64,000 nucleotides of DNA, from the NCBI GenBank assembly GCA_019828565.1, contig JAHDYR010000021.1, positions 124,001-188,000 on the forward strand, read 5' to 3'. Every line of letters starts with the position of its first letter. Position 1 is the first letter of the stretch. Below, piece by piece: positions 1,251-63,801 of this stretch. The translations under genes and the position numbers were made by a program. The stretch is from Carpediemonas membranifera BICM (taxonomy: Eukaryota; Protista; Fornicata). The notes under the pieces are model-generated. The model was not told the DNA's origin and ran no database searches. It was given only the letters and a program-made list of their open reading frames with translations.

Positions 1251-1949
1251 TCACCGCAGGGCGCCCTGAATCCGCATGTCTCGCATCTTCTGCGTGAACC
1301 GAGCAAACGTATGCTCGCTCTGGCGCTTACTAGGCGGCCTCTCAAAGGAAGCAACGGGGTGATCCTTGGCGCCAATCTTGGCGGCCCTCACGCGGTAGGC
1401 TTCTTCAAGCTCGTAGCCTTGGAGAATATCGTCTGTCATTGCATCCACGTCACTCAGGAGTTCTGGGATGACCAGCATCCTCTCGATTTCATCTTCTTTG
1501 GTGCGTTCCCGCTCTCGCCCGTCGGCAAGCGGCTCCTCTCCGTCCATGCCCACACGGCTCCTGAAGCCGTCCCATACGACCTCAAGTGATCTAAGGGCAT
1601 CGTGGACGTGGTTTCTTACGCCGTCGTTGAGCGCGCTCGTCTCCTTGAGCTCAACCTCCATCCTGTCGGCTTCTTCGACGCAAAAGAGGTACATCCGCTC
1701 CTTCAGCTTCGCCTCTTCAAGCTCAATGTGTTTCTCTAGCAGGGTTTTGCCGTCAGAGGCCTTTGCCATCACTGGTGAGTCCACAAGCTGCCGTGCTGTT
1801 TCCATCAACGTCTGTCCCTGGACCTCGTCCTCCTCGCCGCGCACAATCGGTGCGGCACGACGTGCACTGCCTTCGTGGTATCTTGGCCCCACAGAGGCAT
1901 ATCTGTTTCGATTCATTGGCGAAACCAAGTCGTTTTCTCGTTTTCGCAT
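1251..1949 (-). CDS. Hypothetical coiled-coil protein
   Basis: ORF with coding-like composition. First ATG outside the transposon is MRKREND at 1949; the longer ORF call reads into the element end. Confidence 0.6.
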   Translation of the reverse strand: MRKRENDLVSPMNRNRYASVGPRYHEGSARRAAPIVRGEEDEVQGQTLMETARQLVDSPVMAKASDGKTLLEKHIELEEAKLKERMYLFCVEEADRMEVELKETSALNDGVRNHVHDALRSLEVVWDGFRSRVGMDGEEPLADGRERERTKEDEIERMLVIPELLSDVDAMTDDILQGYELEEAYRVRAAKIGAKDHPVASFERPPSKRQSEHTFARFTQKMRDMRIQGALR

Positions 1950-1986
1950 TTTTGCCCGCCGAGCTTGTGCTATTGAAGGGTCAAAC

Positions 1987-2008
1987 AATGTGTTTATACT
2001 GCGCAACA
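1987..2008 (+). repeat. 22-bp direct copy of the element's right terminus (AATGTGTTTATACTGCGCAACA)
   Basis: Identical to 3556-3577. Also at 61996-62017 and 63561-63582, where the match extends to 25 bp. Confidence 0.9.
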
Positions 2009-2213
2009 CTGCCCTGTCTCCCTCCTACTCACGTCTTAAGTCGGTAGGGAGATCGTCTTCTCCAGGGCTTCCACAAAGCGTCTTCTTCGTGGACGTCAGC
2101 ACAGCTGCAAACTTCACAATCGCTCACACGTCGTCTCATTGTCTTCTATTCCACATTAAATTCACTTCTACACTTGTATATGCTGGTAATGGTGTTCATC
2201 GTCGGCTCTATAT

Positions 2214-3497
2214 GTGTGCGTCTGGGCAATTGCAGACGGAGTGGAGACGTTGAGTGGCCTCATCAGCCACTTCAACGGGGAGTACTCGATGTCGCTCCGC
2301 CAGCCTCGCCTCGTGTCGATCGTGCCCATGGCCCCCGTCCGACCGGGCTTCATGGCCTACGGTGAAACGATGGGCCAACTGAACGAGAACTTCTGTCATC
2401 GTGTGGGAATTAATCCCACACTCCCACACGCCACCAAACCGTTGACAGAAGAGCAGGAGGAACCATACCAGAACAACCCCAGGTCAATGGGCCGTCTGCT
2501 CAGCCTGAGCACCGATGGGGTCTGTGTGGCGGTGACGATTAGGAGAGGCTTCGGCCACTATCGGCCACAACATGATGCGAGCATGCCTGTTCGAAAGCGA
2601 GCGAAATGGCGGGAGAAAGAGCGCCCCCGACTCGGGACCAATAATGCCGATGCTCCGCCCGCGCCGGATCCTGATGCCCACCTCATGGGGTTCGACCCGG
2701 GCGCGAGGTCCATCGGAGGGTATTACATCAGGCACCCCGATGGCACCACCAGCTCCGGCGTCCTTCCAAAGTGCGGATACACTAAGACGCCAAGGTTCGG
2801 CTTTGATATGACGGCCGCGTCGTTCAAGAGTACAAGACTAGTGAGCATCAACAACTCTATTAGGTTTGTGCTGGACAACGCGAACGACATTTTCGAGGCT
2901 GGAATGCGTAAGTCTTTCCGCCGAGTGCGCTTTGCGAACCACATCCTTCGCCAGAAGTACTTCGCCCACTGCGGCCAACAGTTGGCTCGGGAGTTCGGTC
3001 GCCACCATCCCATCGCCACCTCCATTCGCCTGAAAGTCTTCTACGGGAGCTCGGGATTCACCACGCCTGCTGGTATGTTCATTCCTTGCGCGCCATATCG
3101 AAAGTTCGCGAGAGAGATAGTTCCCCTTCTCAAGAGGTATAACATTGTCGTCGATCTTAACATGGTTAACGAGGATCGCACCACCGTCGTCTGCCCTCAC
3201 TGCCACGCCCCCTACAAGCGAGTTCGTCCGCGTGATGACCAGCACGTTCACCCACATCGTGTGATGCTCTGCGAAAATCCACAGTGCCGTGGTGCTCAGT
3301 GGCGCGCAACAGTTCCTGATGCTCTGAATGTTGATCATCGGGACAAGAGTGCTGCAGAGAACATCCTGTGGCGTTCTCTTGCCACGGAAGATGAGCTCAG
3401 TGGCTCTCCGTTCAGTCGCACATCGATCCCGCGCCTTCCAACATCATTCCAGCATCATCAATTGGCTAACCGCCAACATTCGTCTACGGACGGATGA
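2214..3497 (+). CDS. Fanzor1-like (TnpB homolog) RNA-guided endonuclease
   Basis: RuvC-I LMGFDPG (D at 2694), VFYG, rearranged RuvC-II NEDRTT (E at 3171) just before CPHC, second Zn pair CENPQC, RuvC-III HRDKSAAENI (D at 3342), plus the upstream STDGVCV motif. First in-frame ATG is 2289; true start uncertain. Confidence 0.88.
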   Translation: MCVWAIADGVETLSGLISHFNGEYSMSLRQPRLVSIVPMAPVRPGFMAYGETMGQLNENFCHRVGINPTLPHATKPLTEEQEEPYQNNPRSMGRLLSLSTDGVCVAVTIRRGFGHYRPQHDASMPVRKRAKWREKERPRLGTNNADAPPAPDPDAHLMGFDPGARSIGGYYIRHPDGTTSSGVLPKCGYTKTPRFGFDMTAASFKSTRLVSINNSIRFVLDNANDIFEAGMRKSFRRVRFANHILRQKYFAHCGQQLAREFGRHHPIATSIRLKVFYGSSGFTTPAGMFIPCAPYRKFAREIVPLLKRYNIVVDLNMVNEDRTTVVCPHCHAPYKRVRPRDDQHVHPHRVMLCENPQCRGAQWRATVPDALNVDHRDKSAAENILWRSLATEDELSGSPFSRTSIPRLPTSFQHHQLANRQHSSTDG

Positions 3498-3577
3498 TGT
3501 TGTGCAGTTTGGCACTTTGATCGTTCCTTTCAGGCCCTGTCTGGGAGGTTCGAAAAATGTGTTTATACTGCGCAACA
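3498..3577 (+). ncRNA. Putative omegaRNA scaffold of copy A1
   Basis: Runs from the stop codon to the terminus. TGTTGTGCAGT pairs with ACTGCGCAACA, GGCAC with GTGTT, and CCTTTCAG with CTGGGAGG. The position matches known TnpB/Fanzor guide RNAs. Confidence 0.65.
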
Positions 3578-3589
3578 GAGCTTGCTGCA

Positions 3590-3754
3590 ATGGCGGGCTC
3601 CTCGTCGCGCTATCTGCCACAGTCGCCGAGTCGCTGGAACATCCACCGGCTCAAATTCGACATCACCGTTGCACTCGCTGAGGGTAACTGCCGGGTCTTC
3701 AACGCCTCCAAGGGGGCGACTTATCCAATTTATGATTGCTTACGTAAAGGTTGA
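3590..3754 (+). CDS. Small ORF or gene fragment, paralog of 31448-31594
   Basis: MAGSSSRYLPQSPSRWNIHRLKFDITVALAEGNCRVFNAS matches the second copy at 31/40 aa. Confidence 0.45.
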   Translation: MAGSSSRYLPQSPSRWNIHRLKFDITVALAEGNCRVFNASKGATYPIYDCLRKG

Positions 3755-8414: not shown

Positions 8415-10289
8415 TTAGGCGACAATACGGGTGCCGGTCTTGCCCTCGAGGGCGTCAACAGCCTTCTCGAGAGAGGTGATGATAGCATCACGGCCAGTCT
8501 CCTTGACGAAGCGGAGGGCAGCGGTGACCTTGGGCTTCATGGAGCCCTCGGCAAAGATGCCGTTGGCGATGGCGTCCTCGGCCTCCTTGACGGTGAGGCG
8601 GTTGAGGGCACGCTGGGTGGGCTTCTTGTAGTCGACGTAGGCGCACTCAACGTCGGTGAGGATCATGAGGTGGTCGGCCTCGACGAGGGCGGCGATGCGC
8701 TCAGAGCAGAGGTCCTTGTCGATGACAGCAGCAAGGCCCTTGACGGTGCCGTCGGGGAGCTTCTTGACGGGGACACCACCACCGACGCCAGAGATGACGA
8801 TGTGGCCGGCATCGAGGAGAGCGACGACAGCGTCCTGCTCGGCAATGCCGATGGGGTTGGGAGATGGAACGACGACGCGCCAGCCGCGGCCGGCGTCCTC
8901 CTTCATGGTCTCGCCCTCGGCCATCATCTTCTTGGCCTGCTCCTCAGTGAAGAACTGGCCGATGGGCTTGGTGGGGTTGGCGAAAGCGGGGTCGGCGGGG
9001 TCGACGAGGGTCTGGGTGAGGACGGTGCAGACAGTCTTGGGGTTGCCGCGGCGCATGAGCTCGTTCTGGAGGGACTGCTGGATCATGTAGCCGATGAAGC
9101 CCTGGGACATGCCGCCGCAAACGTGCAGAGGCTGCTCGGGGACCTTCTCGGCGGCCAGGGCGTTCTGCTTCTGGATAGCGCCGACCTGAGGGCCGTTGCC
9201 AGAGGCGAGGCAGAGCTCGTAGCCGCGGTCGAGGAGGTCAGCGAGGGAGCGAGCGGCAGTCTGGGTGTTCTTGAACTGGTCCTCGGCGGTGCCCTTCTCG
9301 CCGGGCTGGAGGAGGGCGTTGCCACCGACAGCGACGACGAGGCGAGTCTTGCGGGTCTCGCGGCCGATGAGGAGGAAGTGGAGGAGCGCCATCTGGGCCC
9401 AGAGGCGGTTCTCGGCCTCATCGAAGACAACGGAGTGGGGGCCGTCGATGACCTCAGCGGTCTGCTCCTGCTCGCGGTTGGCGGGGAGGCAGTTCATGAA
9501 GGTGACAGTGGGCTTGGCGAGGGCCATGAGCTCCTTGGTGACGCGGTAGGGGGTGAGGTGCTTGAGGCGGAAGTCCTGGACGTCCTTGGCGATGCCGTAA
9601 GACATCCAAGAGTCGGTGTAGACGACGTCGGCGTCCTTCATGGCGGCCTCGGGGTCGTGAGAGACACCGACCTTGGCGCCAGTCTTCTTGGCGATCTCCT
9701 GGATCTCGTCAAGGGCCTCCTGCTCGACAGTGAAGTCCTCGTGCTCGGGGCCGCAGGCGATGCAGTCGAAGCCGCAGACGGCAGCAAGGCGCATGAGATC
9801 GTAAGTGACGTTGTTCTTGCAGTCACCGTAGTAGACGAACTTGATGCCCTCGAAGGTGCCCTTCTTCTCGACGATGGTGAGAATATCGGCGAGCATCTGG
9901 CAGGGGTGGGCCCAGTTGTCGAGGGCGTTGATCACGGGCACAGAGGAGTGCTTGGCGAGGTCCTGGCAGTCGGAGCGCTTGTTAAGGCGGGCCATGATGA
10001 CGTCGGTCATACGGCTGGCAACGATGGAGGTGTCGGCCATAGACTCCTTGACACCGAGGGGGGAGGTGGCGACATCGTAGTAGATGGCGTGGCCGCCAAG
10101 CTTAGTCATACCGGTCTCGAAGGACACACGGGTGCGGAGGGAAGGCTTCTGGAAGATCATGAGAAGAGTCTTGTCCTTAAGGCAGGTGTTGTACTTCTCG
10201 GGGTGAGCCTTCATGTCCTTGGCAACATCAAGGATGTAGAGGATCTCCTCCTTGGAGAAGTCAGCAATAGTGAGAAGGTGGCGGGGCAT
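8415..10289 (-). CDS. Ornithine carbamoyltransferase-carbamate kinase fusion (arginine deiminase pathway)
   Basis: N-half has SLRTR, HPCQ, DSWMSYG, NCLP and FDEAENRL. C-half has VAVGGNAL, GNGPQVG, PTKPIG, VIDKD and GSMKPKV. Single 624-aa frame with strong codon bias. Confidence 0.93.
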   Translation of the reverse strand: MPRHLLTIADFSKEEILYILDVAKDMKAHPEKYNTCLKDKTLLMIFQKPSLRTRVSFETGMTKLGGHAIYYDVATSPLGVKESMADTSIVASRMTDVIMARLNKRSDCQDLAKHSSVPVINALDNWAHPCQMLADILTIVEKKGTFEGIKFVYYGDCKNNVTYDLMRLAAVCGFDCIACGPEHEDFTVEQEALDEIQEIAKKTGAKVGVSHDPEAAMKDADVVYTDSWMSYGIAKDVQDFRLKHLTPYRVTKELMALAKPTVTFMNCLPANREQEQTAEVIDGPHSVVFDEAENRLWAQMALLHFLLIGRETRKTRLVVAVGGNALLQPGEKGTAEDQFKNTQTAARSLADLLDRGYELCLASGNGPQVGAIQKQNALAAEKVPEQPLHVCGGMSQGFIGYMIQQSLQNELMRRGNPKTVCTVLTQTLVDPADPAFANPTKPIGQFFTEEQAKKMMAEGETMKEDAGRGWRVVVPSPNPIGIAEQDAVVALLDAGHIVISGVGGGVPVKKLPDGTVKGLAAVIDKDLCSERIAALVEADHLMILTDVECAYVDYKKPTQRALNRLTVKEAEDAIANGIFAEGSMKPKVTAALRFVKETGRDAIITSLEKAVDALEGKTGTRIVA

Positions 10290-26579: not shown

Positions 26580-27791
26580 TTACAACAGCCGCTTGAGCAC
26601 CTTCTCATGGAACTCGGTCGGGATGATAGCCTTGAGAGCCTCGACCTCAACCCCCTCCCCCGCCAGCTTCTTCGCCTTGACCCGCATGTACGTGACCATG
26701 CTGCCTGTCCCCGTCACACCGAGCATGCCCGCACAATACTCCAGCCCCCGGGCTGAGGGGAGGGCCAGCGCGCCTCTCAGTAGGATGTACACATGGTCGC
26801 CGTCGACCTGGTGGCCGAGGGCGTTCAGCAGCTTGCAGAGCCGCTCGGGGCCGAGCTGTTCCATGTACTTCGCCACCACCGCCCCTGTGGCCGCCTTGAG
26901 CCCGTTGAAGTGGGCCTGCAGCTCGAGGTGGGTCGCGGGCTGGGGCGGGACGTCGATCTCAGTGAAGACAGGGCCCTGGAAGACCTGGGCCGGCTGGGAG
27001 GCGGGCTTCACTTCCTGGGGAGCATCGTCTGTGGAGATGGAGATCTTCCCAGTCCTTCCCGCCTGCTTCTCCGCCTGCTTGCCTTGCTGCAGGGCGACCT
27101 TCTTCTTCTCGCCGCCCCTCGTCAAATCCCGCAGCTGGGTCGAGAGCTGGGTGATCTGCTTGTTCTTACGGCCCGCCTCCGTGGACAAGGCGAGCGCCAC
27201 GCTGGAGAGGGCCGTGTGGTAAAGCTCAGGCTTCTTCTGCTCGTCCCCGATTGCCTTGGTTGCGAGGGCGAACCTGTACAGCGCCTTGACGTTCGTCGGA
27301 TTCAGCTTGAGCGCAGTCTCGCAGTCCTCTACAGCCTGCTCGTTCATGCCGACCTTGATGAATGCGAAGGCCCGGTTCGTGAGGGCGTCCTGGGACTCGG
27401 GGTCGCACTGGATGGCGCCCGTGTAGGAAATGATCGCGTCCATGTAGTCTCCCTTCTTGAACTGCGCGTTTCCCTGGATGCGGTGCTTGTCCGCCTCGGT
27501 GGGCTCGTCCTCCTCGATGGCAACCTTGTGGCCAGCGGTGACTCTCGGGTTTTCCGGCTGATCAATCGGCTCAATTTTGGTTTTCTTCGGCGGTTCGCTT
27601 CGCTGCTCAGCTATGCGAGCATCTACGGTGCCGCGAACGGGCGGGATTGAAGAATTGACAGTGGGTTTCGCCTTTTTGAGCTGTTCGTCGGTCTCTTCGA
27701 CGTCATTTGCCCAAGAATTAAGCTCTCTGAGCTCCTGCTGTTGTTTAGCCGCATTAGCGCGAACCTGCTGTTGAAATTGTATCGGATCCAT
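26580..27791 (-). CDS. RPAP3/Spag1-like TPR co-chaperone
   Basis: N-terminal QQQVRANA..Q..LRELNSW and TPR clamp (GNAQFKKG...NRA..KALYR). ATG at 27791; the longer ORF call reads into the transposon. Confidence 0.8.
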   Translation of the reverse strand: MDPIQFQQQVRANAAKQQQELRELNSWANDVEETDEQLKKAKPTVNSSIPPVRGTVDARIAEQRSEPPKKTKIEPIDQPENPRVTAGHKVAIEEDEPTEADKHRIQGNAQFKKGDYMDAIISYTGAIQCDPESQDALTNRAFAFIKVGMNEQAVEDCETALKLNPTNVKALYRFALATKAIGDEQKKPELYHTALSSVALALSTEAGRKNKQITQLSTQLRDLTRGGEKKKVALQQGKQAEKQAGRTGKISISTDDAPQEVKPASQPAQVFQGPVFTEIDVPPQPATHLELQAHFNGLKAATGAVVAKYMEQLGPERLCKLLNALGHQVDGDHVYILLRGALALPSARGLEYCAGMLGVTGTGSMVTYMRVKAKKLAGEGVEVEALKAIIPTEFHEKVLKRLL

Positions 27792-27812
27792 TCCAGATGA
27801 CCGCAGCGATGC

Positions 27813-27956
27813 TGTGCCGCGCAGGATTAGAATTGTTGAGTCCAAAACACACAGTGATCCAAGCAGCATCAGGATCGCAGTGTGGTTCATCATACTCTAT
27901 CAATCGTGCGGTGCATATCACGCGCGCTGCAGCGCGTGCTTGCTCAACTTAGCAAG
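27813..27956 (-). ncRNA. Putative omegaRNA scaffold of family B
   Basis: Two short hairpins (CTTGCT/AGCAAG, CACGCGC/GCGCGTG), then a ~105-nt imperfect hairpin (CGCAcGATT/AATCcTGCG, CACAC/GTGTG, GATCC/GGATC) closing at the terminus. Confidence 0.55.
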
Positions 27957-29462
27957 TTAATGGTAGCGAGGAAGAGCACCTCTCTGGGAGTCGTAGTGGA
28001 AAGGAGATTGCTCTATCTGATCTGAAGTTGCATCGTAGGTGCACCAAAGGATGTTCTCGCTGGCGCTCTTATTTCGGTGAGAGAGATTGAGAAGTATGTC
28101 TCTCTGCTCGGGATGCCGACGTAGCCGTTCAACGCGCCATGGAGCTCCCTCGCACGCGGGATTCTGGCAGAGCATGGTGCGGTGTGTGTGCACCACACGT
28201 CTGAAGTGTGCTTTGCAGTATGGGCACACGATGGAAGTGCGGAATTCCGAGACCATCGTGACACTCACGACGACGTTGTGCCGGAACATGATGCCAGGGA
28301 GAGCTCGAGCATAGTGGCGGTACGGAGCACAGGAGGGAGTGCCGGCGGAACCGAACAGTGCAGCCCCATACGCGACTTCGAGATGAATGGGCTCCGGGGG
28401 GCGCCCGCCGAGATCATCCAGGAGTTGACGTCCAGCCTGGGCGAAGTGCTTCAGGCGCAGACAGTGATTGGCAAAAGTCTCACGGCGGAAACACTTTCTC
28501 GTCCCCTCGTTGATGATCTGAACGATGTTCTTATGGACAAACCTAATCGACTGTTTGAGAGCCTCTAGACTTGTCGTTTTGAACGATGCTGCGCTCATAT
28601 TCACGCGGAAAGAGGGGGTGGCAGTGTAGCCACACTTAGCGAGTACGCCAGATACACTCTGCCCGTCTGGGCGGCGGATCGTGTAGCCGCCCAGCGACCG
28701 AGCACCAGGGTCGAAGCCCATGAGAGCTTGAATGTCCGGGGCAGGAGTAGCCTCGGCGTCATCCTGACCGAGCCGAGCCCGCTTGTTGCTGCTACCCTTT
28801 TTGTACGTGGGCCGGTCAGCCACCCGACCGCCACGGTATTTCTCGCGACCCACCCAAACCGTCACAGCAACAGAGACCCCGTCTGTCTTCACAGAGAGCA
28901 CTCTGCGGAGCTTGGTGATGTCACCGTGATCACGCTCGTATCTATCAACCTGCTCAGTGGTCTAGTTCTTAGTTGCTGACCAATTCACGTGCACACGGAG
29001 GCGCCTCTTCATCGCTGGGGTGAGCGCTGTTACTCTGCGCTCGATGGTCATGAACCCAGGCCTGACCGGTGCCATCGGCACGAACGGAACGAGCTTCGGC
29101 TCTGGCAGGGCCTGACTGAGCTCGAGGTTCACGGCACAAGTGAGTGTGACCAGCTTGGTCACTGCAGCACTCATGCGCGTGACACACGACAGCACGCCGA
29201 CGAGGGCCTCGGCCACGGTACCAGTGCGACCCACCCGCTGCTCCTCGGGCAATGCATGCATTTGACGATGATGCATGCCATGATCGGCGGCTATGGTGGC
29301 AACCTCAGTGTCGAGCTCGCCTAGGGTGTCGAGAAAATCCTGTCGAACACCCGGCTGATCATGGAGGAGCGGACGCACCCGTTCTAATCCAGCACGAAGA
29401 CGGGTCAGGTACCCGGGTGGCTGTGGAGTACTCACCCAACCAGCGCTGAAATGGAAATGCAA
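27957..29462 (-). pseudogene. Fanzor1-like gene with in-frame TAG (28962-28964) and RuvC-III D>N
   Basis: VPMAPVRPGFM, KTDGVSV, LMGFDPG, VAYGAALF, SEFRTSIVCPYC, CQNPAC and HRNKSASENI. The two listed ORFs are one frame split by a single stop. Confidence 0.85.
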
Positions 29463-29761
29463 TTCTCTAAATCCTTACCTTATCTAAATCAGACTGAACC
29501 TGTTCAGTCCTCTGGAGTTCATCCCAGGGGGGGTCGACAGCTTAAGTCACCTTTACATGAATCCTCCACATAAACCTCTAAATACCACAGATGCTGAACT
29601 TTAAACTGCTCGACCATGAACAATGCTTTTCTAGGTGATTGCTGGTGCTATCACTGGCGCCATCACACATCATGACACTCGCCATAGCGAACAAGGCACC
29701 CTCATCTTGCTAACTGCCGTCCAACTCAATCCAACGCCATACAATTTACGATACGATGAGC

Positions 29762-31382: not shown

Positions 31383-31447
31383 CGCTGACTGGACAAATGA
31401 TCGAATGAGGTCCCCGGAATGTGCAGTCTTCGGCCTGGGTCGCGGCA

Positions 31448-31594
31448 ATGGCTGGCACCACGTCTCGCTATGACCCGCAGTCTCCGAGTCGTTGGGACAA
31501 CCACCGGCTCAAGTTCGACATTGCCGTTGCTTTTGCCGAGGGCAACTGCTGGGTCTACAATGCCTCTGCTGGCGCGGGTGCCTGCACCTTCTAA
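31448..31594 (+). CDS. 48-aa small ORF, paralog of 3590-3754
   Basis: MAGTTSRYDPQSPSRWDNHRLKFDIAVAFAEGNCWVYNASAGAGACTF; absent from the ORF track. Confidence 0.45.
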   Translation: MAGTTSRYDPQSPSRWDNHRLKFDIAVAFAEGNCWVYNASAGAGACTF

Positions 31595-32236
31595 TTTCCC
31601 CGCTCCGGCGACACGGCTGTCGTTCTGGCTTTATTGTGTCTCAGTCTTGATGGCGTTGGGTTCAGTTGGTGTGGTTGGTATCCTTGCGTGGTAACTGTTG
31701 CGATCCGTCAGGAGAGAAGCCCCAGCACGGCGGGCACGGAGGGTGAAAAATGACTTGTTGGATAGCTGTCTTCGGGATCTCATTGGAAACGTGCCTTCGA
31801 GTCGACTCGAGCTTCGGGGTTCGGGTGGTGTGGCAAGAATACCGACTGGTGGATGGTCTAGCAACATTGTCATCGCAGGATCAAGTTCAGCTGAAGCTGA
31901 ATTGGACTGACCGTCTGCATCAACTGCTTGGATTCAGACTTGTTCAAGTCGGCATGACTCACCCCCTCAGCCGATGGCCACAGCTGGTAAGCATGCCTGG
32001 ACGGACTGAGATCGCTGCGCTGAACACACGGCAGCTGTCGAGGTAACCTCTAAACCAGCTCGGGTGGGATCATCCAGACGAAAAGTGGAGCAACAGCCGC
32101 ATCACAATCGCACAGAACATGCGCCCAGGCTAATCCGACCAGTGGACGGTTGACATTGAGCAGACCCAGCATATGCGCCCCTCGCGATAGCATGACTTAC
32201 TAAACAGCGCTTGACGCGACATTGCAAAATTAACAT

Positions 32237-61957: not shown

Positions 61958-61995
61958 GGTCGATATTGAAGCAATTTGGCGGACTGCGTCGCCTC

Positions 61996-62074
61996 TGTTG
62001 CGCAGTATAAACACATTGTTCGAACCTCCAGACAGGGCCTGAAAGGAACGATCAAAGTGCCAAACTGCACAACA
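61996..62074 (-). ncRNA. Putative omegaRNA scaffold of copy A2
   Basis: Same hairpin as 3498-3577. Confidence 0.6.
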
Positions 62075-63355
62075 TCATCCGTCCGTAGACGAATGTTGGC
62101 GGTTAGCCAATTGATGATGCTGGAATGATGTTGGAAGGCGCGGGATCGATGTGCGACTGAACGGAGAGCCACTGAGCTCATCTTCCGTGGCAAGAGAACG
62201 CCACAGGATGTCTCTGCAGCACTCTTGTCCCGATGATCAACATTCAGAGCATCAGGAACTGTTGCGCGCCACTGAGCACCACGGCACTGTGGATTTTCGC
62301 AGAGCATCACACGATGTGGGTGAACGTGCTGGTCATCACGCGGACGAACTCGCTTGTAGGGGGCGTGGCAGTGAGGGCAGACGACGGTGGTGCGATCCTC
62401 GTTAACCATGTTAAGATCGACGACAATGTTATACCCCTTGAGAAGGGAACTATCTCTCTCGCGAACTTTCGATATGGCGCGCAAGGAATGAACATACCAG
62501 CAGGCGTGGTGAATCCCGAGCTCCCGTAGAAGACTTTCAGGCGAATGGGGGTGGCGATGGGATGGTGGCGACCGAACTCCCGAGCCAACTGTTGGCCGCA
62601 GCGGGCGAAGTGCTTCTGGCGAAGGATGTGGTTCGCAAAGCGCACTAGGCGGAAAGACTTACGCATTCCAGCCTCGAAAATGTCGTTCGCGTTGTCCAGC
62701 ACAAACCTCATAGAGTTGTTGATACTCACTAGTCTTGTACTCTTGAACGACGCGGCCGTCATATCAAAGCCGAAACTTGGCGTCTTAGTGTATCCGCACT
62801 TTGGAAGGACGCCGGAGCTGGTGGTGCCATCGGGGTGCCTGATGTAATACCCTCCGATGGACCTCGCGCCCGGGTCGAACCCCATGAGGTGGGCATCAGG
62901 ATCCGGCGCGGGCGGAGCATCGGCATTATTGGTCCCGAGTCGGGGGCGCTCTTTCTCCCGCCATTTCGCTCGCTTTCGAACAGGCATGCTCGCATCATGT
63001 TGTGGCCGATAGTGGCCGAAGCCTCTCTAATCGTCACCGCCACACAGACCCCATCGGTGCTCAGGCTGAGCAGACGGCCCATTGACCTGGGGTTGTTCTG
63101 GTATGGGTCCTCCTGCTCTTCTGTCAACGGTTTGGTGGCGTGTGGGAGTGTGGGATTAATTCCCACACGATGACAGAAGTTCTCGTTCAGTTGGCCCATC
63201 GTTTCACCGTAGGCCATGAAGCCCGGTCGGACGGGGGCCATGGGCACGATCGGCACGAGGCGAGGCTGGCGGAGCGACATCGAGTACTCCCCGTTGAAGT
63301 GGCTGATGAGGCCACTCAACGTCTCCACTCCGTCTGCAATTGCCCAGACGCACAC
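62075..63355 (-). pseudogene. Fanzor1-like gene copy A2, three 1-bp frameshifts (possibly sequencing errors)
   Basis: All D-E-D and Cys motifs retained; deletions fall in GG, CCCC and AA runs. Confidence 0.75.
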
Positions 63356-63801
63356 ATGTAGAGCCGACGATGAACACCATTACCAGCATATACAAGTGTA
63401 GAAGTGAATTTAATGTGGAATAGAAGACAATGAGACGACGTGTGAGCGATTGTGAAGTTTGCAGCTGTGCTGACGTCCACGAAGAAGACGCTTTGTGGAA
63501 GCCCTGGAGAAGACGATCTCCCTACCGACTTAAGACGTGAGTAGGAGGGAGACAGGGCAGTGTTGCGCAGTATAAACACATTGTTTGACCCTTCAATTGC
63601 ACAGCCTCGAGTTGCTAAAACTGCGAAATCCTGCTCACTCGCGGCGTGCTCCAAAGCGCAACCTCTGGGAGCTAACCGTCCACGTCCAGACAGGCTGATG
63701 CCCGAGTCTTGCAGGTCTGACCAGCCCTACTGACAACCGCACCTGAAGCAACTGCAATCCAAAGAGGGCAAGGGCTGAAACTTGCATTTACACGAAACAG
63801 C

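Follow-up and report, generated by a model that had tools for sequence, protein, structure and literature searches.

The Fanzor1 genes described so far are carried by DNA transposons of the Mariner, IS4-like, Sola, MuDR, Harbinger, hAT, EnSpm, piggyBac, Helitron, Crypton and IS607 types (PMC3627910, PMC10711439, PMC10530073), and Kojima 2026 (PMC13565253) states that Fanzor-encoding retrotransposons are not known. Gypsy elements were listed near Fanzors in a preprint by 10-kb proximity only (PMC10312701), and the word is absent from the main text of the final paper. The proteins follow the motif D-X(125,275)-[TS][TS]XX-C4 zinc finger-X(5,50)-RD (PMC3627910); DPG and an alternative RuvC-II glutamate placed six residues before the zinc finger are further marks of a Fanzor (PMC10711439, PMC13565253). 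Here we analyse Fanzor-type elements in a 64,000-nucleotide stretch of Carpediemonas membranifera BICM (contig JAHDYR010000021.1, positions 124,001 to 188,000 of the forward strand), hereafter called the window. These elements are probably non-autonomous retro-elements built from Ty3/gypsy parts, with a Fanzor1 gene and its RNA scaffold as antisense cargo, copied and inserted in trans by the reverse transcriptase (RT) and integrase of Ty3.

Three insertions occupy the window, at 1966-3577 (copy 1, +, 1612 bp), 27813-29589 (copy 2, -, 1777 bp) and 61996-63603 (copy 3, -). As the initial annotation had reported, each starts with TGT, ends with ACA and is flanked by a perfect 5-bp target-site duplication (TSD): GAGCT for copy 1 (left TSD at 1961-1965, +), GATGC for copy 2 (29590-29594, +, and 27808-27812) and GCCTC for copy 3 (61991-61995 and 63604-63608). 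It was equally right that all three lack extended terminal inverted repeats (TIRs) and a transposase, and the metamonad-like host that it proposed is C. membranifera. The single family that it assumed, however, resolves into two. Copies 1 and 3 are 98.9% identical and constitute family 1, whereas copy 2 belongs to family 2; the families share ~57% identity in DNA and 46-48% in protein. The window contains no Rfam match and no tRNA match.

All three window copies are broken. The RuvC/zinc-finger protein attributed to each of them does bear the Fanzor marks, but it is complete in none of the three. Copies 1 and 3 have lost ~670 nt with the start codon and the N-terminal third of the open reading frame (ORF), a segment kept at loci L012, L013 and L021. 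In copy 1 the junction of this deletion lies at 2215-2217 (+) and the Fanzor1 ORF remnant, with its C4 zinc finger, spans 2214-3497 (+); the longest family 1 copies reach ~2280 bp. The ORF of copy 3 has three 1-nt deletions, all in homopolymer runs, and these may be assembly errors. Copy 2 misses ~770 nt, its internal repeat, purine tract and ORF start being deleted, and shows a premature TAG at 28962-28964 and a change of the third catalytic aspartate, in the RD motif, to asparagine; long copies of family 2 measure 2470-2660 bp.

The analysis was extended to 24.24 Mb of genome in 69 contigs, with natural copies as reference sequences and 26-30 sites per family picked by similarity to the window copies. 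A 20-mer from the family 1 right end occurs 240 times, at ~2 per full copy, and the family 2 left end ~55 times. The tabulation of TSDs that the initial annotation had suggested bears out their fixed length: among 40 distinct two-ended copies, 29 carry a perfect 5-bp TSD and a further 3 carry one with a single mismatch, while the TSD sequence is random. Copies are mosaics, and the longest two-ended ones (2.3 kb and 2.7 kb) contain the Fanzor gene only.

The sequence of the protein points to a Fanzor, and TDG and length point to Fanzor1, with weak but consistent database support. Both families present TDG, GFDPG and HRD, and six residues ahead of the C4 zinc finger they have a glutamate (in the contexts NEDRTTVVC and SEFRTSIVC); the earlier call of a Fanzor-type nuclease from DPG and a glutamate directly before CxxC is upheld, and TDG is present as well. 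In copy 1 these residues are encoded on the + strand at 2511-2519 (TDG), 2694-2696 (RuvC aspartate of DPG), 3171-3173 (glutamate) and 3342-3344 (aspartate of RD). A natural uninterrupted ORF was found once, at L045 in family 2. Its 634 residues fit the published motif with D384, TS ~158 residues further on, a CPYC...CQNPAC finger and RD after another 25 residues, and the family 1 protein fits the D/TS/C4 zinc finger/RD motif too. Nearly all copies are broken, yet in either family most of them keep an intact D-E-D triad. Known Fanzor1 proteins (PMC3627910, PMC10711439, PMC10530073) likewise exceed 600 residues and have TDG in the WED domain, DPG, the glutamate six residues before C4 and RD, and their copies are likewise transposase-less; an extended N-terminal REC is a further mark of Fanzor1. 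Unlike their DNA-transposon carriers, the present elements lack TIRs and have ends derived from a long terminal repeat (LTR) retrotransposon.

Hidden Markov model and structure comparisons, also proposed by the initial annotation, are consistent with a protein of Fanzor/TnpB type, but every match is weak. Pfam PF07282 is hit with E values of 0.02-0.19, below the cut-off; the Parasitella Fanzor1 in PDB is a weak match (E 0.63) aligned on TDG and on the glutamate/zinc finger region; and the ESM Atlas matches (feature score 0.98, TM score 0.35-0.55) are all to Fanzor/TnpB-type clusters, each weakly. The protein sets hold no named relative from outside Carpediemonas, one further match set being without names, and none was found in metagenome or viral contigs. 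Fragments P0040 and P0043 share 41-48% identity with family 2 but do not resemble family 1; they probably represent a third Fanzor family of this genome. In public annotation, 22 clustered Fanzor proteins of family 2 (P0002) bear the name 'cytosine deaminase', apparently a misannotation. Four contigs of run X6, labelled as another organism, are 95-99% like family 1 and are possibly the same species in another sample.

The anatomy of the ends connects the elements to a resident retrotransposon. In both families the right end is repeated directly inside the left end (in copy 1, 1977-2008 against 3546-3577), and after the internal repeat comes a pyrimidine run, which reads as a purine tract on the opposite strand. 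The left 21-mer of family 1 is also found in same-strand pairs ~4553 bp apart. The pair at L061 delimits a Ty3/gypsy element of chromovirus type with identical 92-bp LTRs, a 5-bp TSD and the Pfam domains RVT_1, RT_RNaseH, rve, Integrase_H2C2, Chromo and zf-CCHC; all 14 Ty3 sites examined have a 5-bp TSD. The first 31 nt of copy 1 (1966-1996, -) are identical to the U5 end of the Ty3 LTR, the integrase attachment end. The purine tracts are in the same place too: in copy 1 a run resembling a polypurine tract (2009-2027, -) directly precedes, in the retro sense, a 43-bp mini-LTR (1966-2008, -). The order in that sense is thus a TG end with a short repeat, the reversed Fanzor gene, the polypurine tract, a copy of the repeat, and a U5-type end in CA. 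The U5 identity and the place of the polypurine tract make the Fanzor gene an antisense cargo between a short 5' repeat and the 43-bp 3' mini-LTR. Both families also leave solo units, each flanked by a TSD of its own, at L039, L047, L049 and L082 for family 1 (the 43-bp unit) and at L093 and L095 for family 2.

The initial annotation had recommended a search for a longer element with the same ends that encodes a DDE transposase. What shares the left end is instead an autonomous Ty3/gypsy element with gag, RT, RNase H, integrase and chromodomain. Its idea of mobilisation in trans by an integrase-type enzyme is supported; a DNA transposase of the Ginger, IS481 or Tn7-Mu type is not. As for the suspected novelty, a literature search, whose reach did not include Repbase, found no publication on these elements or on this pairing of Fanzor and carrier.

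Ty3 L061 itself has no TGG-type tRNA primer site at L061:4670-4688 (G000:C22:29119-29137), where the 5' LTR is followed by the 8-nt palindrome GTAATTAC; its gag ATG comes ~13 nt after the 5' LTR, and no match for Tf1-like self-priming was seen in it. Across the 24 Mb of the genome there are 1519 RT candidates and at least 150 RT matches over the cut-off; many occupy open frames of 1300-1440 aa, and they reflect a large, young Ty3 load plus non-LTR RTs.

Non-autonomous LTR derivatives of the terminal-repeat retrotransposon in miniature (TRIM) and large retrotransposon derivative (LARD) types resemble these elements, as does Ty3 L061, in TG...CA ends, 5-bp TSD, polypurine tract and solo repeats; with Ty3 L061 family 1 also has the U5 end in common, and the target site is the same. 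In contrast, the repeats here are only ~25-40 nt long and non-identical, the 5' one is without U5, and a primer-binding site (PBS) is lacking. The antisense nuclease cargo, an RNA scaffold overlapping the repeat and the single orientation of insertion are further differences. The elements behave as a non-autonomous Ty3 derivative minus two features, identical LTRs and a PBS, and as Fanzor1 by motif minus an adjacent target-adjacent motif (TAM).

Insertion is one-sided, at a set distance from a promoter-like host motif. This motif, GCAGTTTA(A/T)G, is found beyond the left end; its G falls at -21 in 20/26 family 1 sites and at -20 in 21/30 family 2 sites, against a background of 0.0007 per position. 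The offsets differ between the families (Fisher p 1.6e-8), as does the ninth motif base (p 0.002), and on the right side the motif has no fixed place in 30+30 flanks. Within the window, copy 1 has the variant GCATTTTT at 1946-1953 (+), outside the element, with G at -20 where -21 is the family norm; copy 2 has GCAGTTTA at 29602-29609 (-) with G at -20, and copy 3 has GCAGTTTT at 63617-63624 (-) with G at -21. The motif is enriched near host start codons (11/32 window matches vs 10.6% expected, p 3e-4). Furthermore, in 14/51 flanks the start of a host ORF of at least 300 aa is no more than 60 nt away from the right end, vs 4.8% of random ones (p 8e-8). With the motif on the left and ORF starts close by on the right, many copies sit between a promoter-like motif and an ATG.

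Ty3 uses this target as well. Read by eye, 8/14 of its sites lie 19-22 nt from the motif and 4 lie at 3 nt on the other side; 6/14 abut a Fanzor-type end, two of them duplicating the terminal base of that end. Yeast Ty3, which targets TFIIIB, S. pombe Tf1, which targets Sap1, and Dictyostelium DGLT-A are known position-specific LTR elements. They too insert upstream of genes at a fixed distance from the site of a host promoter factor; here, unlike there, the motif resembles a Pol II promoter element of a metamonad and the offsets are family-specific to 1 nt. Guide-directed insertion similar to that of CRISPR-associated transposons was considered and rejected: a constant guide matching the motif is absent, the motif is a host element, and Ty3 uses it without a Fanzor. 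The right end of the element contains a reverse copy of the motif and draws insertions (L100, L039); we infer that it may act as promoter for both Fanzor and the displaced host gene.

Some target sites have been reused or multiplied. A tandem Ty3 pair at G000:C1:1513863-1523157 (L064-L066) shows the same 5-bp TSD three times, L049 combines a family 1 solo unit and a family 2 element with a common TSD, and at L089 (G000:C8:930999-935179) a tandem triplication of 2080 bp takes in a family 2 left end together with its target motif. A multi-copy family of micro-ORFs of ~50 aa occurs at window positions 3590-3754 and 31448-31594 and at L044, and in two members a Fanzor element stands beside the start. 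The uninterrupted paralogue at 31419-31600 (+), with a GCAG motif ~26 nt before its ATG and no insertion, has the motif-to-ATG spacing of the neighbour of copy 1 and is a positional analogue of an empty site for that copy. An empty allele or a joint skipping copy 1 was not seen in the assembled contigs.

Family 2 adds a second type of evidence. Between its 15-nt terminal segment (29575-29589, +, in copy 2), which ends in CACA in the retro sense, and the repeat lies the 5'-truncated 3' tail of an ORF from a non-LTR retrotransposon with restriction-like endonuclease (RLE), at 29489-29574 (+) in copy 2. In 27 copies these tails have ~24 different lengths, from 34 to >421 nt, yet all meet the element at one fixed junction, mostly with 0-6 extra bases; three junctions are common to several copies. 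An exact match to a tail-free family 2 end was not found. The autonomous RLE family has ORFs of 1391-1505 aa and 18 3' ends (G000:C10:333809, C26:444537, C3:179090 and 15 more) that stop at CATAAA without an obvious tail. Varied sequence follows, and these ends are not tied to the promoter motif; we therefore rejected the RLE element as a site-specific mobiliser. In 3/18 copies the sequence continues into one like the family 2 terminal segment. Candidates for the full RLE donor of the tails are C1:1440973 and C3:179090.

Variable tails, one junction and extra bases are the signature of a reverse-transcription step. Such tails could have arisen either by repeated insertion of RLE tails or by minus-strand jumps from a U5-bearing RNA, at variable points, to the 3' end of the cassette RNA; both routes need reverse transcription at the family 2 end, and the jump fits the near-universal presence of a tail better. 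Linkage between tails and internal variants is uninformative because the copies are mosaic. Tail junctions and mosaicism bear indirectly on an RNA intermediate. U6-L1 elements are template-switch chimeras with a 5'-truncated retrotransposon tail, and family 2 similarly links a full cassette, through one constant junction, to a non-LTR tail with variable 5' truncation; unlike U6-L1, it carries the CACA-ending segment beyond the tail and its TSD is always 5 bp.

On the Fanzor-coding strand, the right end is a candidate scaffold of the omegaRNA type with three predicted stems. In family 1 the terminal 80 nt, which begin at the stop codon and include the final base, fold into a single hairpin (z -7.0 vs -3.6 for the opposite strand). 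It closes at precisely the end of the element, and its 3' strand is the terminal repeat. Two short hairpins precede it, so that the candidate scaffold of copy 1 covers 3462-3577 (+) and its long hairpin 3498-3577. The right end of family 2 has the same layout in a different sequence (z -4.3), with two short hairpins and a long terminal one at 27813-27960 (-) in copy 2; its stem shows no covariation within the family. Fanzor1 RNA similarly has three stems ending at the right end of the element.

By analogy with known Fanzor biology, a scaffold in this position would take its guide from the flanking sequence, often a host 5' untranslated region (UTR). The predicted guide of copy 1 is the right TSD plus flank (3578-3597, +), and that of copy 2 the TSD plus the 5' leader of a host tetratricopeptide repeat (TPR) gene (27789-27812, -; ATG at 27791, 403 aa). 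We rejected the idea that the internal repeat marks a CRISPR-like array or a second guide, this repeat being only the 3' strand of the scaffold followed by the purine tract. The TAM of Fanzor1 usually includes a fixed TSD, whereas here the TSDs are random and the conserved motif lies 13-21 nt outside.

The retro-element reading would work as follows. The element RNA would be packaged by the Ty3 helper. Because the 5' repeat is without a U5 part and a PBS is absent, we propose a non-textbook reverse transcription in which minus-strand DNA would start on an RNA bearing the U5 end and switch template, at TAAA, to the 3' repeat of the cassette, and in which the plus strand would be primed at the purine tract. 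Ty3 integrase would then insert the product 20-21 nt from the host promoter motif with the U5 end toward it. The opposite strand would give the Fanzor mRNA and the three-stem omegaRNA, whose guide would run into the flank, often the 5' UTR of a host gene with its start codon. The likeliest benefit is non-restorative homing, where an empty allele would be cut so that the filled allele is copied, although its chances and those of a mostly decaying passenger nuclease are about evenly balanced.

Several observations weigh against this reading or parts of it. The 5' repeat is without the U5 part in every copy and the LTR pair is not identical; repeat variants are mostly unshared within a copy, with only L013 sharing a private change; and in the Fanzor elements no PBS follows the 5' repeat. 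Textbook LTR replication cannot make elements with such non-identical, mostly non-homogenised repeats and no PBS, and for the same reason reverse transcription of the whole element is a step that we infer. A Ty3 helper sharing the end of family 2 was not found. Ty3 insertions take either orientation and also occur at a second position, whereas the Fanzor elements are one-sided and sharp. The long hairpin of family 2 folds better on the retro strand. Predicted protein folds, alone or with an alignment, are unusable (predicted local distance difference test scores of 35-37), the Foldseek result is meaningless, and the copies show weak selection on their ORF (pN/pS 0.5-0.8, without correction for transition bias). 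In the contigs, which are the sole material, we saw neither cDNA nor particles, nor an omegaRNA or an empty allele. Finally, the usual TAM beside the site, as homing would use it, is missing: two-ended copies show no usable base bias at -10 to -1 and the conserved outside motif ends ~11-13 nt from the insertion site. With random TSDs and no strong bias at these positions the standard TAM rule fails, so homing would need a distant or relaxed TAM plus an empty allele.

Much the same evidence separates the other explanations of how the elements move. They could be cut-and-paste DNA elements with ends borrowed from an LTR, moved in trans by an integrase-like DDE transposase while the Fanzor acts in restorative homing. 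Ginger1/2 DNA transposons, which have long TIRs and their own integrase, provide the model, being alike in TGT ends, short TSD and integrase-type chemistry. TGT...ACA ends, a fixed TSD length, repeats that are not homogenised and many internal deletions, as left by abortive gap repair, all agree with such a route, and so does the rule that Fanzors live in excising elements (PMC13565253). Against it, there are no TIRs and no integrase here, a direct repeat and a purine tract are found in both families along with solo units, 31 nt are identical to the U5 of an active Ty3 and the target is the same. The 2.3- and 2.7-kb copies, moreover, hold nothing but the Fanzor gene, and the only longer element found to share an end is Ty3; among 60 loci and the list of end pairs, in a genome search short of exhaustive, no integrase without RT lies between the same ends. 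We judge this route improbable. Somewhat less probable still is that the DNA copy inserted by Ty3 integrase arises without whole-element reverse transcription, for instance as a linear fragment released by recombination or by a nuclease, so that the element would depend on the integrase without being a retro-copy. This would account for the common attachment end, the TSD and the target together with non-identical repeats and no PBS, but it leaves unexplained why both families keep a purine tract at the Ty3 position and why variably truncated RLE tails meet at one fixed junction.

Target-primed reverse transcription by the resident RLE element, yielding chimeras as in U6-L1, would explain those tails with their extra bases, and strict orientation and the presence of an autonomous RLE family speak for it as well. 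The 3' ends of that family, however, stop at CATAAA before varied sequence and ignore the promoter motif; the 15-nt CACA-ending segment lies beyond the tail, family 1 has Ty3 U5 in place of an RLE tail, and the elements match Ty3 in their fixed 5' ends and exact 5-bp TSDs. This makes it the least credible of the three, with a very small chance of being right. A separate question is the role of the nuclease. The Fanzor may bind without useful cutting, for instance tuning neighbouring genes through guides at transcription starts, or be a passenger or decaying ORF. The lack of a conserved TAM beside the site, the broken state of nearly all copies and the frequent overlap of guides with host 5' UTRs favour this, whereas an intact D-E-D triad in most copies of families only 46-48% identical, and a scaffold topology kept in both, do not; we give it a substantial chance, just short of even. 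The retro-element reading in its fullest form would combine Ty3 copy-and-paste into gene starts, Fanzor homing onto empty alleles, a scaffold stem that is also an LTR end, a helper-donated U5 in place of two LTRs, and targeting by an active RNA-guided nuclease that does not depend on an adjacent TAM. As a whole, we consider this combination rather unlikely.

Two further features of the window concern host genes. The right end of copy 2 (27813-27893, -) contains an internal ATG in frame with the TPR gene (26580-27791), adding 34 codons. An ornithine carbamoyltransferase fused to a carbamate-kinase-like domain is encoded at 8415-10289 (-).

The current model holds that an OMEGA nuclease benefits an element only if the element excises; the present two diverged families, which combine intact triads with shells derived from Ty3, challenge this model. 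Non-restorative homing by a Fanzor in a eukaryote becomes testable, and random TSDs with no adjacent TAM predict an unusual targeting rule that would be of interest for compact editors. A replication route with one and a half LTRs is possible. The case also shows base-precise, promoter-targeted integration and provides a candidate for the core promoter motif of a metamonad that has been little studied.

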